From Orbicella franksi (taxonomy: Eukaryota): a DNA stretch of 64,000 nt. A program made the position numbers and the translations under genes. Positions 11,857 to 63,900 of the stretch are shown here, one piece after another. The DNA is taken from contig OZ116711.1 of the NCBI GenBank assembly GCA_964199315.1, forward strand, positions 4,960,001 through 5,024,000, read 5' to 3'. The notes under the pieces are model-generated. The model was not told the origin of the DNA. It saw nothing but the letters and a program-made list of their open reading frames with translations, and made no database searches. Positions within the stretch are counted from its first letter, which is position 1; every line of letters begins with the position of its first letter.

Positions 11857-11868
11857 TTTATTTTTATT
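11857..11868 (-). promoter_or_regulatory. Tandem AATAAA polyadenylation signals of the giant gene
   Basis: tttatt at 11857-11862 and 11863-11868 on the plus strand, downstream of the predicted stop. Confidence 0.55.
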
Positions 11869-11998
11869 CAGTAAACAGAACAACAACGTGTTTATCTGAT
11901 TCAGATTAGCTTTAGTTAAATTAAGAGTAAGGATATCCCAGCAAATCTAAGAATATATAACTCATTTAAGATTAAATGAAATGTAATTTTGTTAAATA

Positions 11999-12088
11999 TT
12001 ATTGCTGGGTCTTCTTGGTTTCATTTTCTTCTTTCTGCATTAACGGCCTCAGAAGTTCTGCTCGTTTATGGATATCCGCTTCCTTGGA
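11999..12088 (-). CDS. Probable terminal coding exon (SKEADIHKRAELLRPLMQKEENETKKTQQ*)
   Basis: Strong GTAAGA donor at 12933; pyrimidine-rich acceptor (ttttttccctttgatcaacag) at 12089; phase 0; TAA at 12001-11999; AATAAA signals ~130 nt downstream. Confidence 0.7.
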   Translation of the reverse strand, partial: SKEADIHKRAELLRPLMQKEENETKKTQQ

Positions 12089-15000: not shown

Positions 15001-18000
15001 GATTGGTAAAAGACGGTTCAAAAGTCTACCTGGTGGTTTGACGGGCGGTCTAATAGGAGGTCTGACGGGCGGTCTGATTGGTGGTCTGACAGGTGGTCTG
15101 ACACGCGGCGGTCTAACAGGTTTAACCGGTTTAACTCTCTCGGCTGTAACAGAGAAAAACAGAATACAAGTTAGCAAAAAGTTTACTGTCCCAAATAATG
15201 CGTATATGATGTCCAATTCCAAGGAAAAGAAGGTTTATAAGGAGGAAGGATTAACTGGGGAAGGGACTAAAGGGCAAGAGAAGAGGAAACAAAGAATTTT
15301 GAGAAGCAACTGACTGGCCACTCTCACCTCTTCTCTTTCCGTAGACCTCAAATCTCATGGAGATGTGTCTGAACCACGTGCGAGGTTTGATTTTCACGTA
15401 GCGTGCGTAGATATGCGGTGTCAGAACGTGTGCCACCACGCTGTTACGGTCATTGTTAGCCGGGAAGATCTGGAAAATAAAAAGAATCCATATTAAGTTT
15501 AACGTTCAAATCATGTGTCACATCCGTAATGATATTGTATCATAGTTAACCAAGCGAAACACTGTGCTGAGTATTTTTTTATGGAGTATCTTTCCTGCTC
15601 AAAAATAATACACTTTTCTCAGTAAAAAAAGGCGCAGTTTGAAACAAGTAGCTTAAATATATCAACTTCAATTCGTCTCAACATTAACCATCTTAGATGT
15701 TCCTCCTGACCTTTCATCCCGCCGGGGGGGAACTGCCATATAAAAAGGACGGGGGTACTCGTCGTTCCTTTTAATTGTTACAGAAGCGGTTTGGGTGCCT
15801 CAAAGAGTGTTCAGCATCAAAAGGTCCACAGCAGGAGCTTTTGCGGTACTTTTTGGGGCATTGAGGCGAAAAAAAATGACGGAAAATAATGTGTTGTTTT
15901 AGAATAGACCATTTTACAGTTGTCTGCTCAGTGACCTGGCCTTTGTATGGCAGCGAGGCTAGAGTTGACCTTGTTTTGATACAGACCTCACTGCTTTTGT
16001 TGTGTAAAACACGTTGTTCTGATGCTAACTAGGTGCATTTACATGACAAAAGCAGTGAGGTCTGTATCAAAACAAGGTCAACTCTAGCCTCGCTGCCATA
16101 CAAAGGCCAGGTCACTGAGCAGACAACTGTAAAATGGTCTATTGGTACCTCTTAGGGGTGAAAACAACTTCAAGCCACGTCCACAAAGTAGGATCTTGGC
16201 CGGTACCTCTTAGTTCTGACGAGCACCCTCGTCTTTTTTATGTGGGATTCCCCCGGGCCTTTCACTCTAGCTCACACCATTACATTAGAGGTTCTTCGAC
16301 ATCGATTGAAGATGAGTTTGTACAAAACCCAAAAACGTTAACTATCCCGACAAAACTCAGTCTTTCAGTTAGTCGTCTTTTCTGTTTGTGTACATTTTTT
16401 TTCTTTGTATATTTACTATCATTCTGTGCCTCCCTACCTTGACTTGTCCACGTTTCGTGTAAGGTCTGAAGGTGTTTCCGTTATTACTGTACTCCACTGA
16501 GTAACTTGTCACCCACTGGTTCATGTCCTGCCGTCCCTGAGTCAGTATGCGTTTGATAATAGTACGCCGTTTGAGATCCACCTGTAAGAAGAGATAAGAA
16601 AAAAACTCTCTTAGTTCATATAAATGCAACAGGGTATCAACTTAAACTCATAACACCAACTGGAATTTAGATGAGACTTTTCACGACTCATTAACTTGGT
16701 TAGGGTAATGAATTTATATCTGAACTCGTGTAAGGTTTATTAAGGTTTAACAGCAAAGCAAAAGGACGCTTCGTGTTTTCAGTCACCTAACAGGAAACTT
16801 TGTAAAAGTCTTTACGGCAGCAGTTTCATTAACGTTTTCAGCAGGGAGGAAACTGGTTTTCATAGGCCGGCGGCTGCTGTTTTGAACTGAAAAACGTTCG
16901 TCTAGATGGCCAAACCAGGCGGGCAAAATCGCCCTCACAGCTAGTCAATTTGCCCGGTACCCGGCCCCCAATGAAACCCCTACATTACGGACATTTAAAA
17001 AAAGCCTTGTTGTGTACCTCTGAAAAGAAATTTTTAGCTCAATTTATTTCGCCAATGACGCTTTCAGTGATTTCTTTGCCATGCCAGAAGCTCTTAACAT
17101 AGGATCAATGACATACTGCAGGTAAAACTAACCATAATATATTGCCGTCGGTTGTTCCTCTTTGCCGACCACGCTCCTCTGTTCCTACCACGTGCCACAG
17201 TGTTCAATCTTCCAAAGCGTGCCCCATGATATTTGTTCCACTCAGATGACGCAGTCAGATAGCGGTCTCGAATCTTACGATCCTCGATACCCAATGGTAG
17301 ATCCTTTCTTGCTGTAGAAACAAATCAAATTTGTATCATGAATGTGAAGCTAATACCGATAACTCGGGAACAAACGGAAAACGCCCGCACTCCAGGCTAG
17401 AAAAATACCACTTACATGCTCGACCTCCATAGAACTCCAGCCTCATTGAAATATGGTTCACCCATGTTCGTGCATACACACGAACAAACCTTGATCTGAA
17501 TGGAGGGTCAAAACTGTTTTCTTTGATGGAGTAGTGATCACGGTTTCCTCGGAACACCTTCAAGAAAATTAACGAAAATGATTCACACAGGCTCGTTTGT
17601 CTTTTTTAGTGCACTAATGTACGCGAGGCCCAGGTTCCTTCATACTTTAAGGAAGCTCAGTCACGTTATTTTAAGTTATTTTGGCCCCGACCAAAATGAC
17701 CTTTGAAGAAAACCTGAAAATAGTAGTTTACTATGATAGAAAAACACCGCTCAGGGATTACTTTGGGAACTGAAGGGGAACCTCCTCTATGTATTCCCTC
17801 GGTGGAGGTCTTGCTTGAGGAAAAAAAACGCTAAGTTTTGATTTTCTTGTTATATCTAATTGTCTATGGTTTCTAGCCTAGCCTTATAATATAACTTTCC
17901 GCTCGGGGATTACTTTGGGAACTGTAGGGGAACCTCCCTTATCTATTCTCCTAGTGAAGGGCCAGCTTGAGGTCTAATTCGTTCATTATTACCTTAAGTC

Positions 18001-21000
18001 TTGAGTTAACTTTAAAAGGTGTCCATCGATATCCGTCAGGACTGTAAGCCACAGCAAAGTTAGTGACATATTGTTTAGCGTCACTTCTGCCCTGACAAGC
18101 AACCTTAGAGATCCTAACAGGCTTCCTGAAGTCAAACTGGATCCATTGTTTACGGTTGTTCTTCTTGGCTGACCATCCTCCCTTGAATCGACCACTTGGT
18201 TTCTGGTTCAGCCTTGCAAGGTGTGCGGCATGGTAACGATCCCACTCACTCGATGCCTTGATGTATTGCTTCTTAACCAGTCCCTTGGAGACACCGAGGG
18301 CCTTCACAACAGGTCTTGGAACTACAAAACAAAGAGAATGATCAGCATCTTATTTTTTTTGTACAATATCCATACAATGTCATGCAGATGGGTACTGAGA
18401 ATATAAAAGATCATAGATCAACTTTTAGCTTAGAACGAAAGTGTCTACCGCGTCCAACGTCCTGTTTTGACTCCCAGAAAGGGTAAAAAACTTGATCAAT
18501 GACAACAAAACACGTACGTGCTGCGACACTACGCTTCAAATTCGTTCTGAACATACAAATACTCCTTATTTGTCTCAACACACTTCTTAAAGTCCTATTA
18601 GGAGAAATTTGTTTCTGGTCACTGTGATCTTGGGGGACCAATCTCCTATCTTGCAAAACTAAATATAGTGGGCTGCTTTCGGTTTTGTGCAAAAATGTTT
18701 ATTATAAATTGAACAAAGTGCATGAAGTAGGCGGTTTGCGTCAGTTTAAACTGAAACATTGGGCAAAGCGCATTTTATATTTCCCTCTCTACGTTCTCTA
18801 TGCCATAAAAATCAGCGTGTCGCAAGTAAATTATCTCATTTCAAAGCATCATCCACTAATTTAAGTCTCCTATAGTTTATTGGTAAAATTTATTGCTGAT
18901 CTTAGTGTTAATTCTATGTACGAAATCGAAATTAAACAAAGCATTCCTTACCAAGGCGACGCCCATAGACCTCGACCCTCATGGAGATGTGCCTATGCCA
19001 TGTGTATGGCACCACACGGAGGTAACGGGCTCGGAGACGACGTGCAAATCGGTGCCGCACTATGGTGTTCCTGTCGCGGTTACCAGTCAAGAGCTGTGAA
19101 AAAATTTGAAGTTTTAGAGTTACAGGAAACTATTGTAAACAAGTTCTCATCTCGCCAAGCAAGTAACAATCCAACAGTAGTATCCTAAACAACTCACCAA
19201 AGTTCTACGACGCACTTGGTACCACCTCCAGCGGACGCCATCAGAACTGTACATGACTTTGTATGTCTTCACCCACTGTCCTAGATCCTGTCTTCCTTGA
19301 GTGGCCATGCCGTACAAAAAGGCTTTGCTTCCGACATCAATCTGCAGCCACTGGGCACGGTTGTTAGCACGTGACGACCACGCCCCTCTGTGCCTGCCTC
19401 GTCTCTGAGCGTTCAGTCTGCAGCGGTGAGGTCCGTGGTACGCGTCCCACCGTGAGGAGGAACTCAGGGCACTGTCTGGGATGCGACGATCCTCTACTCC
19501 CAATGGTAGTCTCTTTGTAACTGAAATATTAGAAAACAGTTTCATTGTATATGGTAGTAAAGGTTAAGTCTGCATACGAGCCAAGTGGCCCATCAGGCCA
19601 GCGCTTATGCCGGTTTCTGTAGCATGAAGCAACTAGCAGTACTTCTACTCCTCCCTGGATGGGATGCTATTCCATCGCAGGTAAACTCCCAGCATTAAGT
19701 TCGCCAGTACCCATTTATACACCTGGGTGGAGAGAGGCGCTGTGAGAGTAAAGTCCTGCCTAAGAACACGACACAATGTTCCTGGTCAGGACTCGAACCA
19801 GGACGGCTCGATACGGAGACGAGCGCACTAACCATGAGGCCACCGGGCCTCTACATTGTACAAACTAGCAGAAGTAATCTCGGGCGGAACGCTAAAGTAC
19901 TGAACTAACAAAGGTCTACTAGATTTATACTTTTGTTTAGTAGTAAATTTGCAAGTGAACTAAACATTCATCGAGTGGCTTGGTTCCAAAGTGTTTTGAA
20001 CATCGTTCATACCTGCATTGCGACCATACAGCTCAATTCTCATAGAGATATGTCCCCGCCAGCTGACAGGCCTGACACGAATTGATGACGCTCGTATGGC
20101 GGGTTGTAGGTAATGACGAACAATTGAGTTTCTGTTAGTATTGGCACGGAATGTCTGCAAATATACAAAGAAAAATCTGTTATTTGATATACATTAATAA
20201 CGAGTTTAGGGTAAGTAAATTTATCACAGTCGTAAGAATAGACAGTGCTGCATGTTTCTAGTTGTCGGCGCTTGAAGGAGCTACAGTACGTCACGGTTTG
20301 CGCTTCTTGAAACGTTAAGCGTAAATTTTTCAAGCTCGTCGTTTGTAATCCGTGTTAATCTTCTCCATGCTTAACCATCCTTCTTCCTTTATGGTTTATT
20401 ATATCTCTATGGTGCTTTTTTATTTTAGTAAACTGTTATTTTCAGGTTTCCCTCAATATAAACGTAACTTTGTACTAGGCCAAAATAACTCAAAATATCG
20501 TGACTGAGCTCCTTTAACTCCAGATTTTGAGCATGAAGCGGCTAGGAGTATTTCTGCTCCCACCTGGAATGGGATACTTGTTCATCGCAGGGTCCCCTCC
20601 CCCCCTTTCAGCATTTTGCAAAAGCACTGTGTCTGAGAGCTCATTAAAGCCCAAAATCTTCGGAGGCGTTTAATGTCCGGCTCAATATGGATGTGCAATA
20701 GCGGAAGCATGTCTAACGTTAAACGTGTCTCGGATTTTTTGTGGGCAAACGCCGCTGGAAATCTCAACAAACCTTAGTGACTCCCAGCTGTTTGTAATAC
20801 ACATAGTGAGTCTTGTCCATGCTGAACGTAAGGCGGTATTTTGTCACCCACTGGTTCATGTCTTCTCTTCCTTGGGAGGCAATGGCCACAATTTTCTTGG
20901 GTCTCTTGAAACACACTTCTAACCATTGGAAGCGGTCGTTGATTCGTGACGACCACGCTCCTCTGTACCTGTTAGATAAAGATATGAAAGTTATTGTAAG

Positions 21001-33000: not shown

Positions 33001-36000
33001 GGTGGTTCCCACTTCCAGGGTTACCATGGACACTTCTCTTCTGCATATTGCATTTGGCACCCCGCTTACCTTTTAGGCACCAGTTCCCAAGCTCATCTAT
33101 TTGAGATGAGTTTAACGGTAATTTCTGTCACAGGTTTATGTCACGTCGATCGTAGCGTAATATGCCCGCCAACTGGCAGAAACCAGTACTAACATTTCTG
33201 ACTTACCTTTCGGCACAAATAGGGCACAAAGTTGATGCCATCAAACCCGTATGACAGATAGTATCTTGTCACCCATTGGCTGGCGTCCTGACGACCTTGT
33301 GTAGCAACAGCTAGTACCTTGACTGGACTGGTGAAGTCGACCTTAAGCCATTGGTGAGGATTGTTATGCTTAGCTGACCAGGCTCCTATGTAACGACCGC
33401 GCCGAGAAATTTGAAGCCTGGCACGATTTGGTCCATGATAGCGATCCCATTTAGAGGAAGCTGTGATCGCTCGGGATGGAATACGGCCATTCTTCATTCC
33501 TAATGGTTTGTATTGTTGTGATACTGAAGAAGAAAGAGCAGCGGTATAGTTAGGTAGGGCCAACTAAGGAATAAAAATTACCATGGTGATTGCACGTTGT
33601 TACTTAAGCCAGTTTTCCAGAACTTAGCACACTACCTGGTCAATAGACCTTTCCCACATTCCAACAAACAACGACGCCGAGGCCAGGTCAAGGTGGACAA
33701 AAATACAGCAAATGTATGAAAATATCCACCCCAACCTCACTCTAGTGCTATTGTTCGTATACTATTGTACATTATATACAGTGGTTGTGTTTGCAAATGT
33801 ATGGAAGTCAGAAACCTAACGTGTGTGACTTTAAAATTACTAAGACTGCTAATTTTAAGACTACTAATATGTAAAGGTAAATTTTTGTGAACGTTTGAAA
33901 GTTTTAAAAATCAAGATTTATGACGATAAGTTGTTGAAATAAAAGCTGCCATTCAACATCCAAATCTTTAAAATGCTTTCACTTTTCTTTTCTTTCCGAT
34001 TTCCATTAACTTAAACATAAATGGTCTCTCAATTGACAGTTTTACTAATTTCATCTAATGGTTTGTCCCATTTCTGAGGTTCAATTTGTTCCACGATCAT
34101 GGTGTAGGAATGAGTGACATCACAAACCTCTTGTCCAGCCACCCCTGGTGATCTGTGGAATGCATTTAAGTCTTCTGTTCTTCGGATGGCGTTCATTTGC
34201 AGCATAGCATAGTCCTTTGATGATGCAGTTATTTCTCTGTGTTCATAGAACAAATCAGAATAAATTTAAGTGAAGAGTGGAACAGGAAACCTGAGACAAC
34301 AGATCGAACCGAACCCGGAATCAAGCTGGAAATTCCATAGACATGAAGTGGTTATTCTAAAATCTGGCTGCTGTCTCTGATAAAGCCTTAGATTTTACAG
34401 TGTGCCCGTCTTTCTGGCATGCTATCAGTAATAAAATATTGCGGAACCAGCTTTCCGCAAGAACGTTTGAATTACCGCTGACACACTCTCCACGCGCTTG
34501 GCCCTGATAACTACAGGCCTATCTATCATTTATGAAACCAGACAGCAGCATCTGAACACCAACAAGAATAACGCAATACCTTTCGCCAGCAGAGCCCATT
34601 TGATAAACATCTATGGCAGGCCGAGTCGTAAATAATCAACTTAAGACGATTGCTAAGCAAGACACCATTATTTGAAATGGCCACTAACACTCTCAGGGGT
34701 AGGCCGCGAAGCTTTCTCGCTGTGGGAAACTTGAAAGGAAGTTTACATCTTGCTTCCCTGAAACTCTGCAAATGGCCGTGGTTCTTCCTTTGCGCACCGA
34801 TACCATGCCATCTGCGACGCAACAACTGAACAGGAAAATGAAATACATTGTGGTCAGTAAAAATAGAAAACATTTTTAACCGCGCGACCACGGGTCGAGC
34901 GCAGTTCTTGCTTCGCCAGGAACCAGGCTCTCACTCCCACCCTCCCACTTCGCAGCATCAGATGTTTTATGAAGCTGCCAGCAGTTGCTTCTTCTGGTTT
35001 AGCCAGTAAATAGAGTCACTGTGTTGCTGCTGTTTGGCTAGTGCTGCTTCATAGAACTGTTTTCTATCGATTCGAGATAGTGTAGTTTAAATTTCACCGC
35101 GCGGGGTTAAGCTTCCTGTTTTTTTTTTTTTTTTTACCCTAGCGAGTGGGTTGGTGCGGTTGGGTGAAAATTCAATACTGGTGACTCTGTGGCTCTGATG
35201 TGTAATTAAGTGTAGAAATCCTTACTTCTTGTAGAGGAGAAACACCTGAACCGTGCAGTAAGATTTAGAGGTAATCGATACATAAAACTTTAATAAACCT
35301 TGCGTTTGGTCTTATTCAGCATATAAGTAGCTTCAAAGGTTTTCATAAAATCAAATAAGGCCAACACTAACAATCATTCTGAGAGCACGTTATGCATTTT
35401 AATCTTCCCCTCTTTTTAACCATTGGTATTATACTTTAAAAGTAAATGTGATGCTTTTGCCAACGTTACACATCTTGATATGTACATGTTACCAAAAAAC
35501 TTAGGTATTTACACTTCCAAAAAATACAGATACCTTGGGTAACCTATTTAAAATCGTAAAAAAATAAAACGAACACCAAAAACAACAACAACAGATATTC
35601 GAACTCTTACCCGAGCTTTCTGTATGTGACAGCTCACGTGACCTTCCCAGAAACCTCTTCCGTACACACTAGCAAATCGGCAAGCACGCTTCCTCAGGTC
35701 ACACACTCCTTTAGACTGCAGTCCTTGCAGCTTCGGAGGTTTTCTTTTATCTACCGAACAATCACTTGAACCATAACCGCGATAGCAGCGACATTTTCCG
35801 TTCACGCATCGTCCTCGCTTATTGCAGTTGTCTGGACAGAGTTTTGCCAGGATTTTTGTGTTAGGGACAAGGCGACCTTTCTTCTTCTTGTAGTTTTTGG
35901 GATTAACAAGAGCTGCGGTTTTACAAGCGTCTTGGAGACTGGATAATGCTGACTTGGCCATAGATAGCTTTCCTGAAATCTAGTATTACCAAAAAAAAAG

Positions 36001-39000
36001 GGCATTAAAAAACAAACAAGCAGCAGGGATACACGAACAATTATTTTTTGACGGTGGTAGGGGTGGGGGGAGGGCGTGGGCGATTTTCTGGGGCACGAAA
36101 GTAATTTTTTTCAACGTTAGGTTGTGCATGATTTTTTTTGGTGGGCAATAGCTTGTGCAAGAATTCTTTTATCATCAATCTTAAAATAATGATAGTGGGA
36201 AGCACTTGCTCGATTTTTTCCTCCATGGCTCCCCTTGCACGAGTTTTTTTCAGCAGTCAGTTTTGTTCTGCAAGAACTTATTTTTGGAAACTGCCCAACC
36301 TCTTCCCCCCCCCCCCCCCCCCCTCTTACCTTATCCCTCCTCTTCAAAAAATAATGGTCCGTTCCTTAACAACGCCACAGTACCACCGTGGTCACACAAC
36401 TCACCTTAATATCTGTCACGCATTCTGTCATGACTTTGAGCTTCTTGGCGTTGACAACCTTCTTACACACACGTAAGATGCGACTCATCTCTCTTTTGCA
36501 ATGCCTAATTGCCTTCTTGCGAGTTATTCCAGTCGGTGTTGGCCAGGTGGGGACACGATACTTAACTTTAGGGGGTTTAAAAACATAGTTTACAGAGTTC
36601 GGGTCGTAATCTCGATTGTCGGTTTTTCCGGGTTTCTTCGGATGAGGTCGAACTTTGATCGGTTTCACTGGTTTCCCTCCCTTGTCCGTATCTGGTATTG
36701 GTTTGACGTCACAGGTGTTGAAACGGCGGTTGCCCTTCTTGACGCATGCACAAGATGGTTTGACGCGTCGGCTTACAGATGAGATGCGAGGTGGAAGCCT
36801 CTCGAAGAGACTTTTACCAGGCTTTAACCTGAAAAGCCAAAATAATGATATTACGAATACATTAGAGCCTTACCTTACGAAAACTTATGGTCGTCTTCCC
36901 TTGGTGTTAAATTTAACTTGAGAATGAAGGCTAGAACAAACGTTTTACACGTCATAAAGATCACTACAAACTAAATTTCTATTCACCAATAAGTAGACTT
37001 AATTTTTGTTCTTATCCAGTTGCGACTTTCAGTAACCTCTTATGACTTAGTGGTACATTGTGTTTCAGTACTCTCAAACCACTATATCAATTGAGTCGAG
37101 TTATTGATCTTTCATATAAGACCAGCTTGATCTAGCAGCCTTTATAACCAATAAGTTAGGCAATGACTTCTTTGCTTCTAAAGTAAATCTTAGTTGCAGT
37201 TTTCCTTGTGAACCCGAGCTATCTTCCAGCTTGATCTAGCAGCTTTTGTAACCAATAAGTAAGTAAAGCAAAGACTCGTTTGGTCCTAAAGTAAATCTAA
37301 GTAGGATTGTTGTTGTTGTTGTTTATCCAAGCGGCAGTTTTCCTTGTCGACAAGGCTATCCTCCTGTTACTTACATGTACTTCCTGGCAAACGTGTAAAT
37401 GCCTTTTCCCTCCAGATCGTCACGTGGATTGCCGTTGTTGTTCCCGCAGAGTCCCACAGTAGCTGAGGTGTCTGCACCAGGGACTGTGACGTACAAACTC
37501 ATTCCCCAGTATGCACAGTGAGCTTCGACCACAGCTCCTGACCTCATCATGACCTGGGAAATGACATCAAAAGACCAGTTACATTCAACTTCCAAACATG
37601 TTGCTTTCAATGAAACTGATATTACTTAAAACCAGGCAGGGTTGCAATAAAACCCCGCGAGTAAGAACCAGCACAATAAGTTCTTCCGGTATTTTGGGGG
37701 TAGTTGTTAATTACCAGAAAAATAAATAAACTTGGGTTTGGTCCTTAAAATAATACAGTATTTATACACAACTGTATTACTTATTTTCTTGTAACATAAA
37801 TTTGCAATCTTATATCACACTCTTCGCTGAAATTGTTTAACATAATTAAACTGTAACCCACATACAAGAACTAAAAACCCGCTTGATCTTGCTTGGCTAA
37901 ACAGGTTTTTATATTCTTGGGTATTAAAATGGCAAAGGTTCTTAAATCACTAGGTTCTCACACGCGGGTTTTTACTGCACTGCATGGTCAATTGAAGTTC
38001 CCCGGGCTTTCAAGACAGACCTCATCTAGGCAAAACATGAAAATGAACTTTTGACTTCCGGTTGATTTGAGTGAAACAAAATAATAAAGAAGACGTCGCA
38101 AACCTTAAAACGCGTGCTTTGACCAGATCCATATCTTCGGATTCTCATTCGGTTGCCGAGAGGTCGTGGTGACTTCTGTACAACACGTGGACTGGTCCTG
38201 CGCCAAGCTCCGTTACACATGTCAATAGTCACCACGTCATTGTTCTCACGGATAGCCACACCGCAGTTACACACCACTCGCCAGCACGGCCAGATACGCG
38301 CCTGTACCTAAAGAGAAAAAACACGAAAGAACATGTTTGACAAAATTTCCAAACACCGAGAGAAGAGTTGAAAATACGACGTGTAGCGGAGTATTTTTGA
38401 CGAACTTCGAGGTGTTTGGTGAAGTGGTTAAACACTGTCTTTAGTGTTTGATATATCCGCTCACTTTGAAACTAAAACAGAGGAAAAGCAAGGCACTGGC
38501 TTAAATACAACTTATCCAGTCAGCTGAAATAATACTGAGTCCGAAATACACGAAGGCATCGAGTGATAGCAAAAAAGAATTGCTCCCGGTTATTGTAAAA
38601 CTTGAAAGAATCATACCTCGAAGTTCCTTCTCAGACTCTTCACCATAACGTAAGTTCCAGCGTTTCTCAAAATGTCGTAATACCTAACAAAAAGGCAAGC
38701 GCACAAAACAGGTAAATTAAAAAACAAAAAAACAAACAAAAAAACAACAAACCAAGTAGTGCTAGTCCATCGTAAGGTTACCCCGAGCATCAAATTCGCT
38801 GGTACCCATTCATACACCTGGGTGGCCAGCATGGAGAAAGGTAGTGTGGGAATAAAGTGTCCTGCCTAAGAACACAACACAATGTCCCCGGCCAGGACTC
38901 GAACCCGGACCACTCGACACAGTAGATACACTGCAAAATTATTTTTGTTTTTTCCAGACAGATTGAATTCCCCCGCTTACGGAGTCAAGTCTTCACTGCT

Positions 39001-39797
39001 CAACTCATATAAATCTAACACATCTTCCAAGTCCTTGTATGCTATGAATAAAATCCTCAAATTTTTCCATTCAAATCTACTTTTAGTACTTTTTCGTTGT
39101 GCTGTTCATTTTTAATAGTTATTACAGGCAAGTCGAAATGTTTGAAAACGTTCTATAGTTGTACACACACACTGACGAATGATAGCAAATCTGACTTACT
39201 TGTTATCAAATGTTCGATAATGTGGGTCTCCAGTTCCCTGACATTTCTTGAAGCCTCGGTTAGATGTTATGACCTACAATTCAAGAATAGTTTGGATGAT
39301 CTCGACGCCCATATGTTTGGGATAAAAAAGCAAACCAACAAACTTTACCATAGTTGAAACTGGTCACCTTGCAAAAAGATACAAAACAAGCAATTTGGAT
39401 CATTATAAAGCACTGCACGTCAGCAACTTGCATGCAGTTGTACTGACCAATCTCAACATGCTCTGTAAAAAAAAAACCTGCATGCCTCCCCCCTCCCTCT
39501 CCCAAAAACACAAAACGAACTTATCTAAAAACAATCCTCCGATTTCTTCCGATTGTAAGCCAGTAAAAGTTTTTTCTACGTCATTGTATAATAACATGCT
39601 CAGACACGTCTGATGTTCGTCCAGATACTGTAGCACTTGCTTTTTGTCTCGCCGTTATAGTCGACATGTTTTAAAGAGTTTCGATTTTTCTTTGCTGACC
39701 AGTTGCAAGACAGCTGAACGTACCCATCTCGAACACTCCGCTATCTGCAACTCAAATTAATGTCTCTTGGATATGCTTTTCCAGTCATTACAATCTC

Positions 39798-39834
<37 letters not shown>

Positions 39835-41441
39835 ATTTCGAACTACTTGTTTTTGTTTTCCTTGAAAGTTGGAGATAGCGGAGTTCAACAACAGTACATC
39901 AGTCTAATATACAACAGAAATAATTTGGACGCAATGTAACCTCGATCATTTATAAATTGCAAAATAATACGTGCATGTACACACTTACAAAAACAATGTT
40001 AAATCATGATATACCTTGATAGGGGGAAGTCTGTATCCTTTCCAAAATCCACAGAACCCAGGCGTGGATCTTATAGGGCTGAAGTGAATACGGATATTCT
40101 GCCTTTTCAGCTTTCTGAAATCATGCACAGGTTTCACGTAAAATCCGTAATTCTTCCTGTTTCTTTCCGTCAGCATCATCCGGCACCTGTCTGTTACAAA
40201 ACGGGAGTGTGACTCAAGCTTAAGGCCTACAAAACATCTTCTACGACCACGGCATCTGATTGGAACAGAGGTGCGTAGTTTGATCAGTTTCCAGCCGGAG
40301 CTGTCTGTCATAGAAAAAGCTTTAGGATGAACCTGCAAGAAAACGACGGAGTAGTCAAAATTCAATTTCTCGATCTAATCGTATCGCGTACAGAAATCTC
40401 GCGGTGCGTGGCGTGGAATTCGACTTCACAATTGGATTACTATCCACGGGAAGCATTGCAATCATCTCTTGAAGTTATTCGATTCAAGGACAAATGATTT
40501 TTAAGGTTGGGTGCTGAATGTAAATTTCACAATTTCATGCCTAACGTGGAAATACAGTAGCAAATTTCAGTACAAAACATGATTACTTGGTGCTGAAAAA
40601 ATCAATCCACAAGAACAAAAGGAATCATCTACTAGGGTAAGTAATGACATACTATGAAATTCTCAGCGCTTTGATCATAACAAACAGCATGAAAAGAACT
40701 GCGGATTGTCGAGGAGGAAGTGATGTTGCCATAAATTTCTGAAACTTCACCTTGATGCCTGCAAAGAAGTCTTTACTTCTCGTGGTCATTGTCCAATCCT
40801 TACCACTGGAGTATCGTGCCCTTACTTTGCATGCAACCTGAAACGAATCAGTCACCACAAACACCATTACAATTCTAACTCGGATTGCAAAATAGAAAAC
40901 ACTGGCAAAAGAGTACAAACAGGGTTGAGAAAAGTATTTTACTTTGTCTTTGGCATGCAAACAGTGTTTAATTTTATTTACACGAGAAAAAATTATTCGT
41001 CATTCGATTCTTTAATTAGCAAGTTGCCTTATTTATTTGACTCGGGCGCTTGTTTCTCAGAACCATTTTTATTCTTAACAACAATATTTAAGATATGATT
41101 GGAACACCAATAAAGCAGATTCAGATACAAAAATTATTCACCAGGAAGGATGTCTTTAGTTGAATTAACAGTCCTTTAATTAAAGGACCATTTCACTCTA
41201 CTAACCGTTGTTCCAGCCTTGAAGCCATAAGTGTTTTCCAAGAGCTCAGCATGAGTTCCTCGCACGGTTTCTGTTTTGGTCACTCGCTTGTTCACAATCC
41301 ATTGCACACGTGCAATGAATCGGCTGTTTCTTCGTCCGCGGATGTTGAAGTAGCAGCGAAGGGCAACCTTAGAACAGCCACGGCCAGGTTTAATGACAGG
41401 GCGCACGACAGGTCGGGAAATGACAGGATAATCTGACACAT

Positions 41442-41481
<40 letters not shown>

Positions 41482-44400
41482 ATCGATCGATCGATCAAGC
41501 AGGTAGTCAGTCAGTCAGTCAGTCAGCGTCCACGCATTTAAAGGAACTAAGTCAAGGGCTACGCAATTTTAAAAACGTAACCTACTCTTTTTTTTAAGCA
41601 GGTCTTTCGTAATTGTTCCTTGTTTGTTTTTTATAACCTCTTAATGTTCTTCTAACCTTGTTAATAACTATATCGAAGTTTTCCCCAAATGAAAAACGTC
41701 ACTTAACACATTCCAAAGAAGTTTCTTTTCAGAATTTTTGGCATTTTTTAGCCTTTAGGTTTGTGCAGCCATACAGTTACTGAGTTGACGTTTCCACTCT
41801 CACCTGCACGACAACCGTACACCTCGACCCTCATAGATATGTGACCATGCCAAGATCTGGGGTTAAATTGTACATAGTGTCCGTTAACAGGCGGGTCGAT
41901 TGGCTGTTCTACCAAGGAATATCGGTCAAAGTTGCCTCGGAACAGCTGAAATATTAAACAGATAAATTCTGTGAGTCCTGACTCTGCCCCCTTCCACCCC
42001 CCTGGAACCCCTCCTCCACCCTCCGAAAATAACCCCTCCTCCACCCTCCCCGAAAATAACCCCTCCTCCACCCCTCCGAAAATATCCCCTCCTCCACCTC
42101 TTCCAAAAATAAGCAGTCCTCCACCCCTCCCGAAAATAACCCCTCCTCTCTAATTTCGGGAGCACAAAAAACATTGGATAATATCCTTGCACCTCACTTC
42201 AATTTAAGCCCAGAGTTCTTCGTATTTGCAACTGAAAATGTTCAGTCAATACATCCAAACTCAAGTCTGACTATATTTGAAAATCAAAAGTCCTTCGGGT
42301 AACATTATACTATTCCTAAATTGAGCCATTCCCCCCAAATTTTCGTAATGTTCTGATCATTAACATTATCCCTACATTGACGGAGACAATATCTCCTGAT
42401 TGAAAAGTTCGGTCTTTACGCTTCCATATAAATAATGAATAAATAATAAATTGCAATACTTAGAGAGGAAGCAACATCAGCCCTAGCTGGTTTTCAAGTG
42501 GGTCTTCTTTCCGGATCGATTTTGATTTTGGAAATGTTGGTTTTTCAGGAGGGAGGAAAACCGGAGAACCCGGAGAAAAACCCGCGAAGCAAGGCGAGAA
42601 ACAACAACAAACTCAACCCATATATGACACCGGGTCGGAATCGAACCAAGGCCACATTTGGGGGAGGCGAGCACTCTCACTGCTGCTCGTAAAATATACC
42701 GTATTAATAACACTGTTGTTTCGCAAACCTTAATCTTCCCTCCTTCCTTGATGGGTAAGAAAGTCCTTCCATTCTGACTGTAGTACAAATAGTACGTCCT
42801 GACAAACTGGGTTGCATCATCCCTCCCCTGAGTGGTGACTTTTGTTATCCTGGTGGGTCTCCTGAGGTCGATCCGCAGCCACTGGTTTCGGTCATTACGT
42901 CTTGCACACCACGCGCCAACGAGACGGTGGACACGTCTTCAAATAAAACCAATTTTATGAACACACGATTTTTATCTTTACATGACGAAAATAAGCGATT
43001 TTTTAACATTCTTTTACGGTTATACCTTTTAATCCACCGTACGAAAAAATATGGCGACTGACACATTTACCCATAATTCTTGCCGCACGAAAACTTTACC
43101 AACGCTCATAAAAAAGTACAAAATAATTCTAACATCTTTAAACCTAGCATACAATGTGTCGTTAGCACAGGGACAAATATTGCAAATATATGATGTTCCT
43201 TGTACTTTAGAGTCTGTGTAAGGTTCGCATGGTATTACGGTAAAATGTTCAGCCACCATCTTTTCTTTTTCTCTATAACCTTAGTTGTAGTATTCAAAAT
43301 TTATTTGTGTAGCTTTTGCCGAGCCTATCACCAAAAACACTGACATGATTTTAACGCAAGACGAATTGGAAAATCCGTTTTGAAATTTAAACTCAAGCAT
43401 ATTGGCAAAATTCGAGGAACATTTCATTGTCAGTTTCCTTTGTAAAGTCAAATGTAATTTTTTTGCCATCACAAGGGTTGAGTTTCATTTCTACTTAATT
43501 ACGATATTACAAATATAAAGTAACACGTGTGTCGAGGTCCTGAACAAAGCAAGTTTAAAAATGTACATCAAACTCTTGACATGTGCTGAGGACTTCTAAA
43601 CCAAATTGCTAAGCACAGGTTCAGTTCAAGCAGTCAGTCTTGCCAGCGGACTTACCTCTGGTTAAGCCGAGCCCGAGATGGATTATGGTTCCCATCCCAT
43701 GACGAGGAAGCTCTGATAGCATGATTTGGAATACGGCCATTTTGCATTCCAAGAGGTTGGAAACACATACGGAACATGGCTAACAAAGAACGAACAAATA
43801 TAATAGGTAAGCTAAGAGAAGAGCAGTGCGTACAAGTTATAAGAATCATAAAGACCAGGGCCGGGTTGTTCAAAGCCCGATTAAGCTAACCCAGGATTAG
43901 CAAGAATTTTGATTTCAGTTTGGTAACTTTTGGGTGCCGTTTTCTGTTTATATTGTTTGTCCTTCAGGTTTGAGTTTGAAAAATCTCAAACTACGTAAAA
44001 CATAAGCAGTGAAAAGCATTTTTATACAAGAAAAATGGATACTTCGATTAACTTTTAATCCTGGGTTAGCGTTAACCGGCTTTCGAACAACCGGGCCCAG
44101 CATAATAAGCCAGGTTCAACATATCAACATTCTAACATGGCTTCGAGACTTTCAGGACAAACTTCTATATTTGGTGTGTTTCCTTTGTATCCAAGTCTCT
44201 TATGGGAATTGAGGGGGAAAAAAAACTTCAAAAATTTGCAATTTTAACGTGAAAGCCACGGAGCCATGTTTCAATATTGTTGTAGCGAACGTGACCTATT
44301 GAAACAAAAGTACCCTAGAACGGTATTGGAAAACTAACAGTCATTTAAATGGGAACAGTATGTTTAACGGTATGTAAGGTTTTACTTACCCTTATTGCAG

Positions 44401-53400: not shown

Positions 53401-54727
53401 AATCAAGATAGTGTTTGACCACATTTCGAAACACCTCGAAGTTTGTCAAAAAATACTCCGTTACGCGTCCTATTTTCAACTCTCTTCTCGGTGCTTGGAA
53501 ATGTGGCCAAACACGGTTTTTCGTGTTTGATATTACATATAAAAGGTACAGACCGATGATACATCCAAAGAATTCAACCCTCATAGACATCCATCCACGA
53601 TACGCTCTGGGGTGAACACGAACATATCGAGCAACAAATGGTTTGTTAAGGGTGTGTGTTACCACGATGTAACGGTCGTAGTTGCCACGGAATAGCTGCA
53701 ATAAAAATGAAATCGTACAAAATTAGTTGAGTCGATAGATCTGTAGAAAAGCCGAGGGGGCAGAAACTTCACTAGAATCCTAAACGTATCGGTAAATAAC
53801 TGAAAATGATTAGCACGTCCCAAGTAATATAGTCGGAAGAAAAACAAACGTTTCTCGGCAAATTTTCGCACAGTTTTGTACTCTTACTATTAAAACATTG
53901 TGACCACTCGTGAGCATTCGGAACATTAACACGTCAGTAGTGCACAATGAGGTTAAGGCATTGTTATTTAGCAACATGTCGTAACGTACGTAGGTGATGA
54001 AAACTGCAGACTTGATACAAATTTCTTCCTCAAAGCTGACCTTAACTGGTGCTTGTTCAATGGAGTGAACATGTCTCCGAGACATTACTAAAAACAGTGT
54101 TTCATCAAGATTTCAGTCTTGGACGATCCCAAATATAGATATGTGTCAGGTGTTACTAGAAATACATGCTAGTCAATGAAATTACAGCAAAGGTCCGAAA
54201 CAGATCACGCTAGCGGCCAAACTGGTAACAGTATTATTTGGTTAAAAGCTTCTTAGGGTATCGCCTGAGGACACATTTTACCTTGATTACTTTTCGTTCG
54301 GCGTAATATTTATAAGTAGATCCATCACGGCTGTAAGTTATTCTGTAAGTCCTGACCCACTGTTCTGCGTCATGTCGGCCCTGAGTGGCGATGCCTGTTA
54401 CACGAGTCAGTGCTTCAAAATCAATCTGCAAGGAAATCGTATGTGAGATAAAAGCTAACAGTTTGTGAAACTAATACGCACATTTGTTCACTCAAAGACA
54501 TCTTGTACAGTTGTACAGTGGTACCGTTGGACACCACTAATTCAAACTCGGTTATTTCGAATTCCTCGTTATTTGAAACTCAAACCCATTTCCTTTGGAT
54601 TTGCCCTTCACTCATTTACTATCGGCTTTTTCGAAATCCCGATATTTCGAACTATTTTTCGTTTCCCCAGAGAGTTCGACTGTCTATAACGTAGGAAGCC
54701 TATTCTGCAAATAGTGCGTATTTAAAG

Positions 54728-54786
<59 letters not shown>

Positions 54787-57700: not shown

Positions 57701-60700
57701 TTATGTCAAGAAAAAATTGAATCCCTCATTACTACCCAACCAGTTAGCTTAAGAGTCTTTGGCTTAGAGTACACGCAACCTAATTACTTTCTAATTTGAC
57801 TTAAGAAACCGGTTAAGCCTAGATTCAGAATTTATGTATCTCCTGTCCTTATTTATCACTGACTGAGAAAGTTACTTCATTGTGATCGGCTGAAATAAGC
57901 AAAAATATAGTTAATTTTTCATTTGCACTACAGCGCAAATTATACAGGCGCATTCGTAATTTTCATAGTCATAAAATAAATGAGTAATCGTATGAAAGAT
58001 CGAACAATCAAGGATTTACATTACTCATGATATATGAAAATTATTTTAAATTGCGCTCGCCTTATGGTTCCTGCAATTTTGAGAGAATTTTCAAATAAAG
58101 CCTTCACTGCACTCGCATTCATACAATTATTTTGACTACACTTGTAAAAGTTGTACCAGAGTTAACCAATGTATACTTACCTGCAGCCATTGTCCAGCGT
58201 TATTTCTCTGGGCACACCAGGCACCAGTCCTACCACGACCAGCAACCATATTGAGCCGCCCGCGATCTGGGCCATGTCTAGAGTTGTGACTTGAAGAGGC
58301 AGACAGTGCACCGCTTGGGATGCGGCGATCTTCTATACCAATAGGAACCTTACATCGTCCTTGAAAGTACATAAGAGAACACATAATTTCAAGTTCAAGT
58401 TGCATGAAGAAAAATCTTCAAAATACTGTTCAATACAATGACAAAACGACACACCGAAACCTCCGAATCTTTGCTGACTTCCAAATTGCTAGAAAACAAC
58501 TTTCCACAACAACAGAATTTATTTACCCCATTTAATAGCTTATATGTACAATCATTTCAAATGATCTTTTGAAAAATTGAAAGGTTACCAGCTCCCTGAA
58601 ATAACTAAAAAGCTAAAGATGCCAGGGAGCTGGTTTATTTTCACTGACTATAATTCGATTGATCAAATTTACACTAAAAATGTGCTGCTTTACTTTCTTT
58701 AACGGGAAAACATTGTTCATTGATCATTATAAAATGGTCATCACCAACACAACTTAAAACCAAAACCAGAAGAAACAAAACTCTAACTCTGACTTTGAAT
58801 TTTCTTGCTAGGATCAACAAATATTAAACGCTAGCACTTGTTTGGCCATTGGAAAAAAAAATTCCCGAAATCATTTTTTTAGGGCCTACGGAAACCATAA
58901 CAATATTTCAAGCTGATATCAGAAGAATAAAGTAAAATGAAAATAAGTCACTGCACTAGAAGAAACAGTTAACCTTACCGATTGTACAGCCATAGAGCTC
59001 AACTCTGATTGAGATGTGTCGGTACCAGGACCTGATGTGAAGTCGCACAAAACGGCCTCGGATTGGTGGAACAAGGGCATGGGAAACAACTGTGTTCCTA
59101 TCGCGGTTGGCTTGGAAAATCTGATGAACGAAGATCAAGTAAAGTACCTCAGGTTAAGGAATGAAATACAATTTTCACTGACCGTACATGTGATATGACG
59201 GATCGAACAAAAAGTAGCCCAATTACGCTTTTAATTTGCTGTTATTTCGTTGGCAGTAAGTATCTAGCATTGGCCGTACAATGCCGGCCCCTTATCAAAA
59301 CATGCAGCGACCTTAAAATAAAACGTCTTGACTTTACACTGACTTTGACAAAAATGTTAAGCATTTTCAGTTCCCGAGTATTAGCCGATCGCGAAATAAG
59401 TTTCTTATTTCCCGACTTATTTCCCCGTCCACTAGCAGCCACGATATTTTAGCTGTACAAGAATATTTCGAAATGAAACCCACCTTCCTCGTATTGCGTT
59501 CAAAATAAAAAGCAAAGTAAACTCCATCCTGACTGTACAGTAGATAATATGATGTGACCCATTGGTTAACGGTGGGTCTACCTTGAGTCGATATACGGAC
59601 GATTTTAGTGGGTCTCCCCAAGTCAATTTGTAACCACTGGAAGGCGTTATTCGCTCCTGCAGACCAGCCGCCCATGTACCTCCCCCTGCGTTGGTTTTGT
59701 AGCCGAGCTAAATAAGGAGCATGATGATTATCCCAGCGAGATGATGACGTAATGGCGACATTTCTGATGCGGCGATTCTGCATTCCCAACGGACGATTAC
59801 ACAGTTTACCTGTGAAGGCAACATCACATACATTTTTACAGAGACGTTCCTGGTTTTCGAGAAGACTTTGGTATGAAAATGTTTCTTCTCGTAAGAACTT
59901 CAATTGTACAAGACCATTCATGGCCATATAGCCAGACAAAAAATTTAATAAGGCAATGTCCATGAAAAAAGTATGACTGAAGCAATGTCCATGAAAAAAA
60001 TGACTGAAGCAAACTCCATGAAAAAATTATGAGTGAGACAATGTTTATGGTTAAATTCTCTTCTTAGTTATTTAGGGTGTTTATGATGACTGTAAACAAC
60101 AAAAACAAAAAGGCAAGTGTCTCGGTTGGCCTCTTACTAGTTACGGCCCAAGCAATTTATAAATTCGCTGGGAAGAAATCATGCAGTTTGTTATAAGTTG
60201 GAATTTGTTACATCAAAGTCTTTTCATACTCTACTGTATATCACAAAGTTCCGTAACTGTTGTTGGAAATTTCGCGTCACCCACAAGGTTACTGCTACTT
60301 TTTAGATTACTCCCTTTTTTGTTTGTTTTATAAGGTGTTTGTGGCCTCAAGATTACTTGCATCAGAATTATTTAGCTTCAGCTGGCCTCACCTAATCTGC
60401 AGCCATAGAGTTCCACTCTCATGGAGATGTGACTGCGCCATGTTCGGGGGTGAATACGAACATACCGTGCTTTGAAAGGGCGCAGGAAGCGATGGGTTAC
60501 GACGAAGTTCCTCTCGAAGTTCCCTTTGAAAACCTGTGTAAAACAAATGAAACAAGAGAACACGTCAGAAAGTTATTTCACATGCAAACTTCACAGAAGG
60601 CTACTTAAATTAATGACATTGACAAAGAAAATTACTTCACCTTAATCCTTCTTCCTTCCCTATATGGGATGGATCTGACATTGTTCATACTGTAGGACAC

Positions 60701-60956
60701 TGCATAACTCGTGACCCACTGGTCAGCGTCATATCTACCCTGGGTAGCGATTCGCTTGAGTCGAGAGACTGTGCCCAGGTCTATATTCAAGTACTGCCTG
60801 GCATTGTTGTACCTGGCGGTAGATAAGTAAGACATAACAGCATAGATAAGTTCAAGTGCCAGTTTCTCTGGCAAAGTAAGTTTCTTTTCTATCATACATG
60901 ATACTGAAGGGAAACTGGCCAAAGAAAAATAGGCCATTTTCTACAAATAGGGCATT

Positions 60957-60993
<37 letters not shown>

Positions 60994-63900
60994 CTGAGGC
61001 TGATGAGTCATTTCAAATGCAAATGATGGTAATCTGTTTTTATTGATAGTCCTCCGCATGAGCTCCATTGTCAGCTAGTTTCAGCCCTATATCGAGAACA
61101 CGAATATGGCCTGTTGGGAACACCAAAACCTTACTTACTTACAACAATATAAAAAGTTAATATGATAAAGAGGTATTTTGCCGAAACACTGAACGAAACC
61201 ACAAAATTAAGTCTGAGCGTGTCCAAATGTAATCGTACAGTACTCACTTTGCGATCCAACCTCCTCGAACATAGCCGTGATTCCTGGACTGAAGTCTGGC
61301 ATTCCACGGTCCGTAGTAATAGTTGTACATGGACGATGCCGTAACAGCTTGTTTGGTAACGCGACCGTCCTCCATTCCCAAGGGAACATCACAAGGATCT
61401 TATATGAACCAAGGAAGAGATTAGCCAAAAGGAATGCATAAGTAACAACTGAATGAGTAATAAAGTACATGTAACTCGGCTGAATGAGTAATTTATAACG
61501 TGCAACTGAACTAAATTTCTACGAGTTTTGATAACAAGAACAAAGTGAAATTATTCTTCATGAAATGGGTACCGTTATTCTTATATTCCCGGGAGCCGTG
61601 GGTAAGGGTGGGTTGAGTCGCCAAAAGGCCTCTGAATTCTTTTTATTATTATTATTATTATTATTATTTTGTCTCAACGTATAGCATCCTCAAGGACTAA
61701 GGGGGAGAGTCGGGTCAAAATTTTTGGGTCAGAAAGAAGGCAACCGGGACTATTTACCCCTGGGTCTCCGAGGATGCACCTATAGTTGTGTGTTATATGA
61801 AAACAACAACAACATACAACGTTTTTTTCTCAAGGTCGGTTGATGAGACAGGGGTGAAGTGCCCCAAACTCAAAATTGGAGCAAACGACAGTCAGCTCTC
61901 TGGCCAGAACAGGAAAACAGTAGAAAATAACTGTCCATAAGATTTTGAATTAATAACTGCAATATCATGCAAGCAAGTCACATTTCTACTAAAGACCTTC
62001 TTTCTGTCTATTAAATACTGTGTATCACTTAAGACCTTTACCTGCTCTGCAGCCATAAAACTCGGCTCTCATGGAGATGTAGCCATGCCATCCCCACGGG
62101 TGCAGACGAAGATAGCGAGTTTGTATTGGTGGAGACAGGACGTTATCCACAACGCTGATACGGTCACGATTGGCAGTGAAGTACTACAAAGAGTAAACAA
62201 AACATTGTTCATCTAAATGAGCTGAAAACACTTCACTATCACTATAAGGAACTGAGGTAATACACACGTTGCCAAAAACGTCCGTTGCTAAGTTAACATG
62301 TGCACGATTTGTTTTTCTGCAAAACCACAATGAGGCAGTGTTGCAAGATAGGTTGCACCCAATAACAGACGGTTAAACGTCAAACTGCTATACTTACAGG
62401 GACTTTAATAACTGTTCTGCTTCGAGCTGATAACTGGTCATTTAGACACATGCCCAGTTGTATAAGCTTCAACTCGAATCTTAGGAAGACCATAGTGTAA
62501 ATATGATACGATTTCGTGTTTAAATAAAGATTGAATTGTCTTGACTTATACCATCTGTAAGCATCAAAAGGAAACAAATCTGACCTTATCCTGACTTCTC
62601 TGTCTGTAGGTTGCCCAGTGCAGCGTGTCCAAGCTGTATGTCAGCTTGTATCTTGTCACCCACTGGTTGGCATCTCGTCTTCCCTGTGTAACAATCTTTC
62701 GCACAGTTGTAGTTCTTAAAAAGTCGACCTTAAACCACTGGTTACGATTGTTATGTCTGGCAATCCAGCAGAAAGGCTTGTGAAGTCGTCCATTTGGTGC
62801 TGTGTAGCGTCCATTGTAAGCCGATGAGGAGGTGATTCGTGCATTGGGGATTCTTCCAGATTCTAGGCCCAGTGGACGGTTGCAAAGTGGGGCTAAATGG
62901 CAACAAAACAGCAACTAAGAAGAAGGTCCACCACACCTTGTACTTGTTTTTGACATTTTGTGGCTTACAGTTGTTTTAGTTGGAAAATTTTATAACCAGT
63001 TTGATTCTCATTTTCTTTTGTTTCAGATACTGATACGAAATTTTAAGCAAAGTTAAATAAAACGAAACTTTGAAAAAAGGCAAATTAAATGGAAAATTAA
63101 AGGTAAATTGAAGGTAAATGAATGTAAAAACGTCGCGTTTAAAAAGGATTCAAATCAACTTTTTTGATCTTTGATTCTCTTTGGTTTATTGACTCTTTCT
63201 TATGCAAGTAAATATATGAAGCATACCTCAACTGCGGAATTAAGATTTAAAGATATGAGGGATAATCGAAGACTTGAAACCTAAGCAGTAAGTTCAACTA
63301 TTTAAGGTTTCCTTCAATGTGAATGTGCGTAATTTAGTACATCTCAAAATATGACTTATTAGCACATAATAACATGACCAATAAGTTCATGTAACGACTT
63401 ACCAATAGGGCATCCTATGAATTCCACTCTCATGGACATCCAGCCATACCAGGTCAGCGGATAAACACGGATGTATGAAGCGGCTATGGATCTGGGGAAA
63501 GTGTTGGTGACTATTGTGTGACGGTCACTGTTGGCTGTGAAAACCTGTCAAACAGGAATGCATAGAGCAGCAGGTATTAATTGTAAATGCGACCGAATTA
63601 CCCACCGTGTTTTAACATTCATATAAGACCAAAGCGTTTTGGAACGAAGCTAAGTTAAGTGTTAGAACTGATATTTTGAAGCGGTTGTTAAAGGATGAGT
63701 GGTGAAGAGACAGAACAAAAGATGTTGACAAAGTTTTTGTTCGTTAGGAGAGTAGAGAAACTTTACGAATGGCCAATTCGCTCTGTGAAACGTGTCTGCA
63801 GGGCCGGGAATCATGGTAGTTGTATTCATCAGAAAAAATATCCTGTCTAAGATGATGAATATAACTACCATAATTCCTTGCAAGCCCATCTCATAGAGGA

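Follow-up and report, generated by a model that had tools for sequence, protein, structure and literature searches.

A probable giant gene of the stony coral Orbicella franksi in which two discoidin domain subtypes alternate

Discoidin domains (PF00754) are known to occur as tandem pairs. In factors V and VIII, and also in lactadherin and EDIL3, C1 and C2 are two adjacent, diverged domains, each closed by a disulphide between its N- and C-terminal ends, and neuropilin, an extracellular protein, carries the tandem pair b1-b2. Titin, nebulin and similar giant proteins are built of super-repeats with patterns of Ig and Fn3 domains, and for titin-type tandem proteins a role of misfolding between similar adjacent domains has been argued. 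Sea-urchin Nectin is a secreted protein with six tandem discoidin domains that are 47-55% alike (PMC10057474), and a mix of discoidin, vWD and EGF domains recurs in marine temporary adhesives of sea stars, flatworms, limpets and cnidaria (PMC10057474). Here we analyze a stretch of 64,000 nucleotides of Orbicella franksi (assembly GCA_964199315.1, contig OZ116711.1, here C14:4960001-5024000), called the window below. This stretch probably represents the 3' third of a single giant minus-strand gene of the coral, in which two discoidin subtypes, A and B, alternate as the footprint of an ancient A-B unit copied in even-numbered blocks. A literature search found no description of such a gene.

The window contains no runs of N. 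A scan of the coral's own 497-Mb genome for discoidin exons gave more of them directly upstream, and C14:4940001-5174000 was then analyzed. In this region, a hidden Markov model (HMM) scan found discoidin exons between 5152038 and 4975328, all of them on the minus strand. They form 75 domains (C14:4975328-5152038), numbered N1 to N75 across the gene; the window carries the last 26, D1 to D26, where Dk is N(49+k). When joined, the exon models of the 75 domains give 34,815 nt and 11,604 codons free of stops, and those of D2-D26 in the window give 3,881 codons, again free of stops. The modelled order is 63 discoidin domains, a VWD/Vwde/EGF module, 12 Cys-free discoidin domains (here the second array), a Pro-rich linker and a VWA domain.

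A strict A/B alternation had been described in the initial annotation of the window, and we find it confirmed there and holding across the 75-domain gene. Its principal marker, the residue three positions after the glycine of the PLG motif (G+3), is Asp in 12/12 type B domains and Asn, Ser, Thr or Lys in 13/13 type A domains among D2-D26, as had been reported. Over the whole gene, 36 of 37 B domains and none of the 38 A domains have Asp at G+3; these are every even-numbered domain from N2 to N62 except N32, every odd-numbered domain from N65 to N75, and no other. D1 was typed B from flanking sequence, with the motif PIGLEDK. The motif P-x-[KR] ahead of TQGR, described as mostly confined to A, occurs in 9/13 A domains and 0/12 B domains. 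Further type-specific features are one extra residue before the first Cys in A, a basic (A) or hydrophobic (B) character two residues after this Cys, Gln (A) or Glu (B) at G+2, the motif SSxW (A) or SSxY (B), and Tyr (A) or Val/Ile (B) as the first residue of exon 2.

Separate A and B clades, which the initial annotation had predicted, were recovered in a maximum-likelihood (ML) tree of the 75 domains: one clean branch divides A from B with support 97/96 and is present in 98% of bootstrap trees. When the three best diagnostic positions were taken out together with the rest of the first 20 alignment columns, the tree placed 36 B domains opposite the 38 A domains plus D22; with this trimmed alignment the clean A/B split has a higher likelihood and is not rejected (approximately unbiased (AU) test, p 0.68). 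The ML tree of D2-D26 has an A/B split supported at 91/96, with D22 grouped with D17, D21 and D25, and forcing a clean split gave a slightly better likelihood (AU p 0.52). The even/odd periodicity of similarity that had been anticipated is also present. Within the window, mean identity is 0.46 for A-A, 0.47 for B-B and 0.43 for A-B comparisons, and across the gene the nearest neighbour by identity is a domain of the same type for 75/75 domains.

The two-domain pair had further been proposed as the repeating unit. Period and linkers agree with this, but the units that were visibly copied are larger, eight and four domains long, and the pair is only the deepest layer. Mean identity among N1-N63 is 0.41 at odd lags, 0.48 at even lags and 0.64, 0.62 and 0.60 at lags 8, 16 and 24, and among N64-N75 it is 0.54 at lags 4 and 8 and 0.46 at lags 2 and 6. 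The 75-domain tree contains eight position-specific clades corresponding to a1 b1 a2 b2 a3 b3 a4 b4; this eight-domain cassette repeats about eight times (N1-8, N9-16 and so on to N57-63), and the Cys-free array (N64-N75) is a four-domain cassette present three times. Matches between exon DNA lie at offsets of 8, 16, 24 and 32 domains in 82 of the 97 high-scoring segment pairs assignable to a domain pair (69-89% identity), and introns are not alignable between cassette copies. With identity peaking at a fixed multi-domain lag and same-position domains forming clades, the gene has a super-repeat architecture. The nested periodicity from cassette copying, with same-position domains most alike (0.64 at lag 8), resembles titin and nebulin; unlike these, the coral gene uses one domain family in two subtypes with periods of 2, 4 and 8 and is, by its domain content, extracellular. 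For 13 A and 12 B domains in random order, at most one break in alternation has a probability of about 5e-6, a figure that treats the copies as independent, which they are not. Because of this dependence we use the chance estimate at the level of the ancestral cassettes, about 0.01 (2/70 x 2/6).

All of these domains share one exon plan. The window contains 26 exons of exactly 142 nt with AG..GT borders, each encoding the C-terminal third of a discoidin domain. The 142-nt exon is preceded by a first part which starts in phase 1 and ends in phase 0, and which is one exon in 17 domains (16 of D2-D26, plus D1) and two exons in nine. On the Pfam PF00754 profile, the first part covers positions 2-87 and the 142-nt exon positions 86-127; exon-1 pieces score 53-78 bits (cut-off 28.2) and exon-2 pieces 25.5 and 28.9 bits. 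First-part lengths agree with those given in the initial annotation: 323 nt in 9/12 B domains (D3, D5, D7, D11, D18, D20, D22, D24 and D26), 320 nt in D13 and D16 and 302 nt in D9, and 326-332 nt in 11/13 A domains, the exceptions being D2 (308 nt, or 317 nt with an alternative donor) and D15 (317 nt). Every domain-exon border has canonical AG/GT sites, and all domain exons are phase-symmetric, 1-1 around each domain, so every cassette duplication was in frame. Exon 2 is 139 nt long in b1 of cassettes 2-6 and 145 nt long in b3 of cassettes 2-6 and in N28, always with the phase kept. We rejected the presence of a B-specific intron: the intron 144 nt before the exon-1 end is shared by D5, D7, D16 and D26 with N5, which is type A, and one at -172 is common to D3 (B) and D12 (A). 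A pair of N- and C-terminal cysteines, read from the residues and predicted to form the discoidin disulphide, is carried by D1-D14 and, among N1-N63, by 59-60 domains. N14, N23, N31 and all of D15-D26 have lost both cysteines together, and N15 is without the C-terminal one only.

The linkers between domains also follow the subtypes. From the last Cys of one domain to the first Cys of the next, the A-to-B linker has 4 residues in 31/31 junctions, and the B-to-A linker has 4, 5, 6 and 7 residues in 5, 18, 5 and 3 junctions, respectively. At the equivalent alignment columns of the second array, A-to-B linkers have 4 residues in 6/6 cases and B-to-A linkers 6-7, which brings the invariant A-to-B spacing to 37/37 junctions. 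A spacing of 4 residues also separates Cys 479, the last of C1, from Cys 484, the first of C2, in the light chain of factor VIII, and likewise the corresponding cysteines of pseutarin C (1268 and 1273). A-B thus consists of adjacent, diverged discoidin domains with a short fixed linker, as in pairs of the C1-C2 type, with the differences that the coral gene has 37 pairs against one and that its last 12 domains are without both cysteines. Judging from these spacings, A-B is probably a tight pair, acting as a folding and mechanical unit, and B-to-A a looser hinge.

To compare this gene among corals, we used four loci (L018, L019, L020 and L023) from three other coral assemblies. A word search with 18 exon-1 pieces gave 960 matches; the best 120 of the 960 are unnamed, unspliced open reading frame (ORF) fragments, none with exon 2. 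Further discoidin ORFs (L021 and L022) lie elsewhere on the L020 contig. N48-58, N26-34 and N63-74 have orthologues in these assemblies, arranged in order, and the VWD module again separates N63 from N64. Each domain shares 72-96% identity with its positional orthologue; with the remaining domains of the window gene, the comparisons run gave 50-75% as a rule and never more than 83%. The orthologous loci keep the alternation, the extra introns, the VWD module and the loss of cysteines in the second array: the N31 orthologue in L019 is without both Cys, and so are the second-array orthologues in L020. Since the orthologue of N32 has Asp at G+3, where the window gene has Asn, the exception at N32 is a local change. 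Between assemblies only exons align, introns having diverged beyond alignment. For 26 exon-1 orthologue pairs, synonymous divergence (dS) is 1.1-1.3 (about 1.2), non-synonymous divergence (dN) 0.09-0.12 and their ratio (omega) 0.03-0.15 (about 0.08). Because positional orthologues are 1:1 at this dS, the duplications all predate the split of these corals. Each of the 26 tested domains is under strong purifying selection and has a 1:1 counterpart in other corals; therefore, the array is a stable, used structure and not a homogenising repeat.

Two arrays of discoidin domains had been distinguished in the window. Both do alternate, but they are the tail of the 75-domain gene and are separated by a VWD/EGF module, so that the A-A step from D14 to D15 is no true junction of neighbours. 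The D14-D15 gap is 8.3 kb long and contains non-discoidin coding blocks on the same strand (34126-41432 in the window). In the order of the gene, these are a Pro-rich linker and Ig_VWDE-like block with a weak Ig_VWDE match (41432-41203), a VWD domain in several exons (39297-37377; Pfam VWD 27.5 bits, cut-off 22.9), a Vwde-like block (36830-36375), a tenascin-type EGF domain (35982-35599; Pfam EGF) and two further blocks conserved with L023 (34825-34562 and 34239-34126). PF26129 (Vwde) was called on the orthologous ORF, to which the window block is 85% identical while having no Pfam match itself. Across at least 11 coding blocks, the module shows 65-92% amino-acid identity to L023. VWD, Vwde and EGF in this order make up a VWDE-like module, resembling VWDE also in the weak Ig_VWDE match; unlike VWDE, it does not stand alone but sits between two discoidin arrays. 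A B domain lost from the gap was considered and rejected, as the HMM scan finds no remnant of it and the conserved VWD/EGF module occupies the place.

Reads and contigs of four coral RNA runs were compared with 36001-42000 of the window to find what the D14 donor joins; RNA runs matching the window carry the labels coral metagenome or coral holobiont, and the raw-read run gave almost no data. A single spliced contig connects two minus-strand VWD exons (38102|37551, GT..AG). It is the only real splice joint found in 36001-42000 in the four runs, and it lies inside VWD and does not link the arrays; the remainder is low-depth unspliced signal. A phase-compatible exon path from D14 to D15 exists, with no read spanning it. 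Some 45 nt within a VWD-module intron (38868-38911) reach contig depths of about 10,000-19,000 in three coral metatranscriptomes, and the contigs end loosely on either side. Scans of these nucleotides gave no Rfam family and no tRNA, and the depth probably comes from an abundant transcript or repeat located elsewhere that has a short match here.

The most probable scenario for this arrangement is as follows. An ancestral two-domain unit, A then B, was multiplied only in even-numbered blocks: it first grew to the eight-domain cassette a1 b1 a2 b2 a3 b3 a4 b4, which was then copied about eight times, and separately a four-domain cassette was copied three times to give the Cys-free array. Recombination between like subtypes could hold the register, and the array has been kept intact by selection. 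Several points weigh against this interpretation and against the single giant gene it assumes. No RNA tying the 75 domains or both arrays into one transcript was found, the single splice joint lying between VWD exons, nor were the first and last exons of the discoidin gene found. D22 does not group with B in the tree of D2-D26 or in that of the trimmed alignment. Raw identity fails to separate B from A in the second array, where N65, N69 and N73 have an identity of 0.458 to a1 versus 0.43-0.45 to b1-b4; the class of the B domains there follows from the model-based tree, the diagnostic residues and the linker rule. Subfamily trees of A and B, in which mirroring was sought, do not give the order of the steps from 2 to 4 to 8 domains. 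Finally, the tight A-B unit is suggested by linker length, and the function by domain content.

Given this content, discoidin together with VWD, EGF and VWA, the most likely product is a secreted fibre of an adhesive or matrix kind, which would bind glycans or lipids at many sites. The FA58C, vWD and EGF content of the Nectin/Sfp1 kind is present, and no signal peptide or first exon was found. Tandem discoidin domains and the mix of discoidin, vWD and EGF are shared with Nectin-type adhesives; the coral gene differs in its 75 domains, the strict order of two subtypes and the additional VWA, and its adhesive role would be by analogy. A more specific and tentative proposal is that A-B forms a rigid, two-headed module similar to C1-C2, the whole being a fibre of 37 modules with flexible B-to-A hinges, in which differing spikes would make an alternating, highly multivalent two-ligand adhesive. 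The second Trp in the spike of factor V C2, which takes part in membrane binding, aligns with the SSxW/SSxY position, where A has Trp and B has Tyr. If such rigid two-ligand modules exist, no discoidin array described so far would be as long, and the gene would be a natural model of the way in which giant extracellular proteins are organised by alternating subtypes.

One alternative, which we regard as possible though less than even, is that the alternation is purely historical: an A-B seed was followed by copying of even cassettes, and the subtypes have neither distinct roles nor a structural pairing. Cassette copying alone gives the pattern, and the independent evidence for more is only the order within one eight- and one four-domain cassette (about 0.01). 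This alternative is also in line with other discoidin arrays of the same genome, at 30.47-30.50 Mb and 33.96 Mb of contig C5, which are one-domain repeats without A/B contrast: scores with A and B profiles differ by at most 4 bits, as compared to 10-36 bits for independent upstream domains of the giant gene. A/B alternation is thus not general to discoidin arrays of this genome. A purely historical origin does not sit well with an invariant A-to-B linker beside a variable B-to-A linker, with type-specific residues kept across subfamilies and species at dS above 1 and omega of about 0.08, or with the Asp retained by the N32 orthologue. The two C5 arrays, C5:30474822-30500332 (period about 1196 bp) and C5:33964757-33979902 (period 1108 bp, identical scores), consist of near-identical one-domain units and are far younger than the giant-gene array.

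Selection against misfolding of similar adjacent domains could also maintain alternation, since unlike neighbours would fold better. Adjacent domains are the least alike in the gene, with a mean identity of 0.414 and a maximum of 0.493 against 0.48-0.64 for domains of the same type, yet 41% is not especially low, near-identical neighbours are tolerated in the homogeneous one-domain arrays elsewhere in the genome, and the fixed 4-residue A-to-B linker would be unexplained. We consider this explanation unlikely.

Still more improbable is a shared origin with C1 and C2 (or b1 and b2), in which A and B would correspond to these domains in corals and descend from a pair that the common ancestor with vertebrates already had. 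The initial annotation had likened the A-B pair to these two, and in junction geometry, with the 4-residue Cys spacing shared with factor VIII C1-C2 and pseutarin C, the likeness stands. It does not extend to descent, as exon-1 profiles of A and of B both find their best match in C2 of factors V and VIII (1sdd_B 489-595 and 3cdz_B 525-633, exon 1 only) and in b1 of neuropilin (2qqj_A 6-110). Neither a 1:1 correspondence of A/B with C1/C2 nor one with b1/b2 is therefore obtained; both pairs are tandem, but the two coral profiles are nearest to the same member of each. The B profile scores 38.7 bits against factor V C1 and 83.6 bits against C2, and both of these factor V domains have a non-Asp residue at G+3.

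It is hardly credible that gene modelling has created the pattern from dead or mis-assembled repeats: the HMM used to choose the exon models was itself built from these domains and RNA support is thin, but there are 11,604 codons without a stop, canonical AG/GT at every border, and three independent assemblies that keep every domain at omega of about 0.08 with introns diverged past alignment.

Details of the domains in the window are as follows, all on the minus strand; exons are given in the order of the gene, and each domain extends from the first to the last coordinate listed for it. D1 (N50, type B, subfamily b1) occupies 63403-64000, with exon 2 at 63544-63403 and an exon 1 of 305 nt which starts at 63944 and passes the window end. 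It is followed by D2 (N51, type A; 62892-62585, 62183-62042), which has an orthologue in L018, and by D3 (N52, type B; 61398-61248, 60812-60641, 60533-60392), whose extra intron is kept in L018. D4 (N53, type A; 59809-59484, 59120-58979) scores 63.4 bits with PF00754. The array continues with D5 (N54, type B; 58359-58181, 57617-57474, 56909-56768), D6 (N55, type A; 56514-56189, 55669-55528), D7 (N56, type B; 55079-54901, 54425-54282, 53695-53554), D8 (N57, type A; 53277-52952, 52685-52544), D9 (N58, type B; 51659-51358, 50939-50798) and D10 (N59, type A; 50133-49802, 49603-49462). Next are D11 (N60, type B; 49022-48700, 48009-47868), D12 (N61, type A; 46977-46824, 46317-46146, 45937-45796) and D13 (N62, type B; 45399-45080, 44531-44390). 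D14 (N63, type A; 43779-43656, 42936-42729, 41945-41804) is the last domain with the Cys pair and has an orthologue in L023. Just upstream of its exon 2, the intron contains a 27/53-nt tandem repeat of 5.4 copies (42006-42148).

Beyond the VWD/EGF module, the second array opens with the Cys-free domains D15 (N64, type A; 33523-33207, 32744-32603) and D16 (N65, type B; 32218-32040, 31393-31253, 30902-30761). Downstream lie D17 (N66, type A; 30472-30144, 29468-29327), D18 (N67, type B; 29070-28748, 28138-27997), D19 (N68, type A; 27529-27198, 26845-26704), D20 (N69, type B; 25498-25176, 24738-24597) and D21 (N70, type A; 24122-23794, 23476-23335). D22, the domain that strays in small or trimmed trees (N71, type B), has exons at 23133-22811 and 22220-22079. 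The last four are D23 (N72, type A; 21528-21393, 20968-20773, 20154-20013), D24 (N73, type B; 19520-19198, 19093-18952), D25 (N74, type A; 18321-17993, 17557-17416) and the final discoidin domain D26 (N75, type B; 17311-17133, 16581-16438, 15469-15328). Right after D26, a candidate Pro-rich linker exon with (V/I)(K/R)PP repeats and phase 1-1 (15030-15143) is proposed from splice sites and frame. The VWA domain follows in two coding blocks (13831-13586 and 13338-12847; PF00092 42.1 and 53.2 bits).

Further features were noted in and around the gene. A histone H2B-like open frame on the minus strand (window 4502-4837; Pfam Histone 76.6 bits) limits how far the discoidin gene can extend at its 3' end. 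Downstream of the discoidin gene and on the opposite strand to it, an intronless frame of 311 codons (window 8024-8959, plus strand) covers the whole 7tm_1 profile at 24.3 bits, under the 30.5 cut-off; the orthologous locus L019 also has a 7tm_1 gene beside the array. Just upstream of N1, two minus-strand frames (L013:9243-9686 and L013:8547-8753) contain the motif C-x-N-F-D-F-E-x-G-N-L-x-G-W ... W-G-H-I-N-F-D-D, which has the look of a conserved one. They have no Pfam match and may encode the N-terminal domain of the giant protein. In N7, exons 1 and 2 are separated by a 4.5-kb intron filled with a tandem satellite whose period is about 190-200 bp (C14:5134711-5138400). N25 is interrupted by a 34-kb intron (C14:5066294-5100542) with many repeated elements of about 1.2 kb, which includes a 4-kb segment duplicated at 96% identity, its copies lying 12.8 kb apart.

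This locus shows the building of a giant extracellular protein layer by layer, in steps of two, four and eight domains, through cassette duplication, and indicates that an array of this kind can afterwards be retained with each domain in its place, in coral lineages whose synonymous sites are saturated. The 4-residue A-to-B linker, common to factor VIII C1-C2, suggests that the pair of two discoidin domains may be a recurrent structural solution which has arisen more than once. For coral biology, these results point to a very large, conserved and probably secreted adhesion or matrix protein, with candidate roles in mucus, in the anchoring of tissue to skeleton and in larval attachment.

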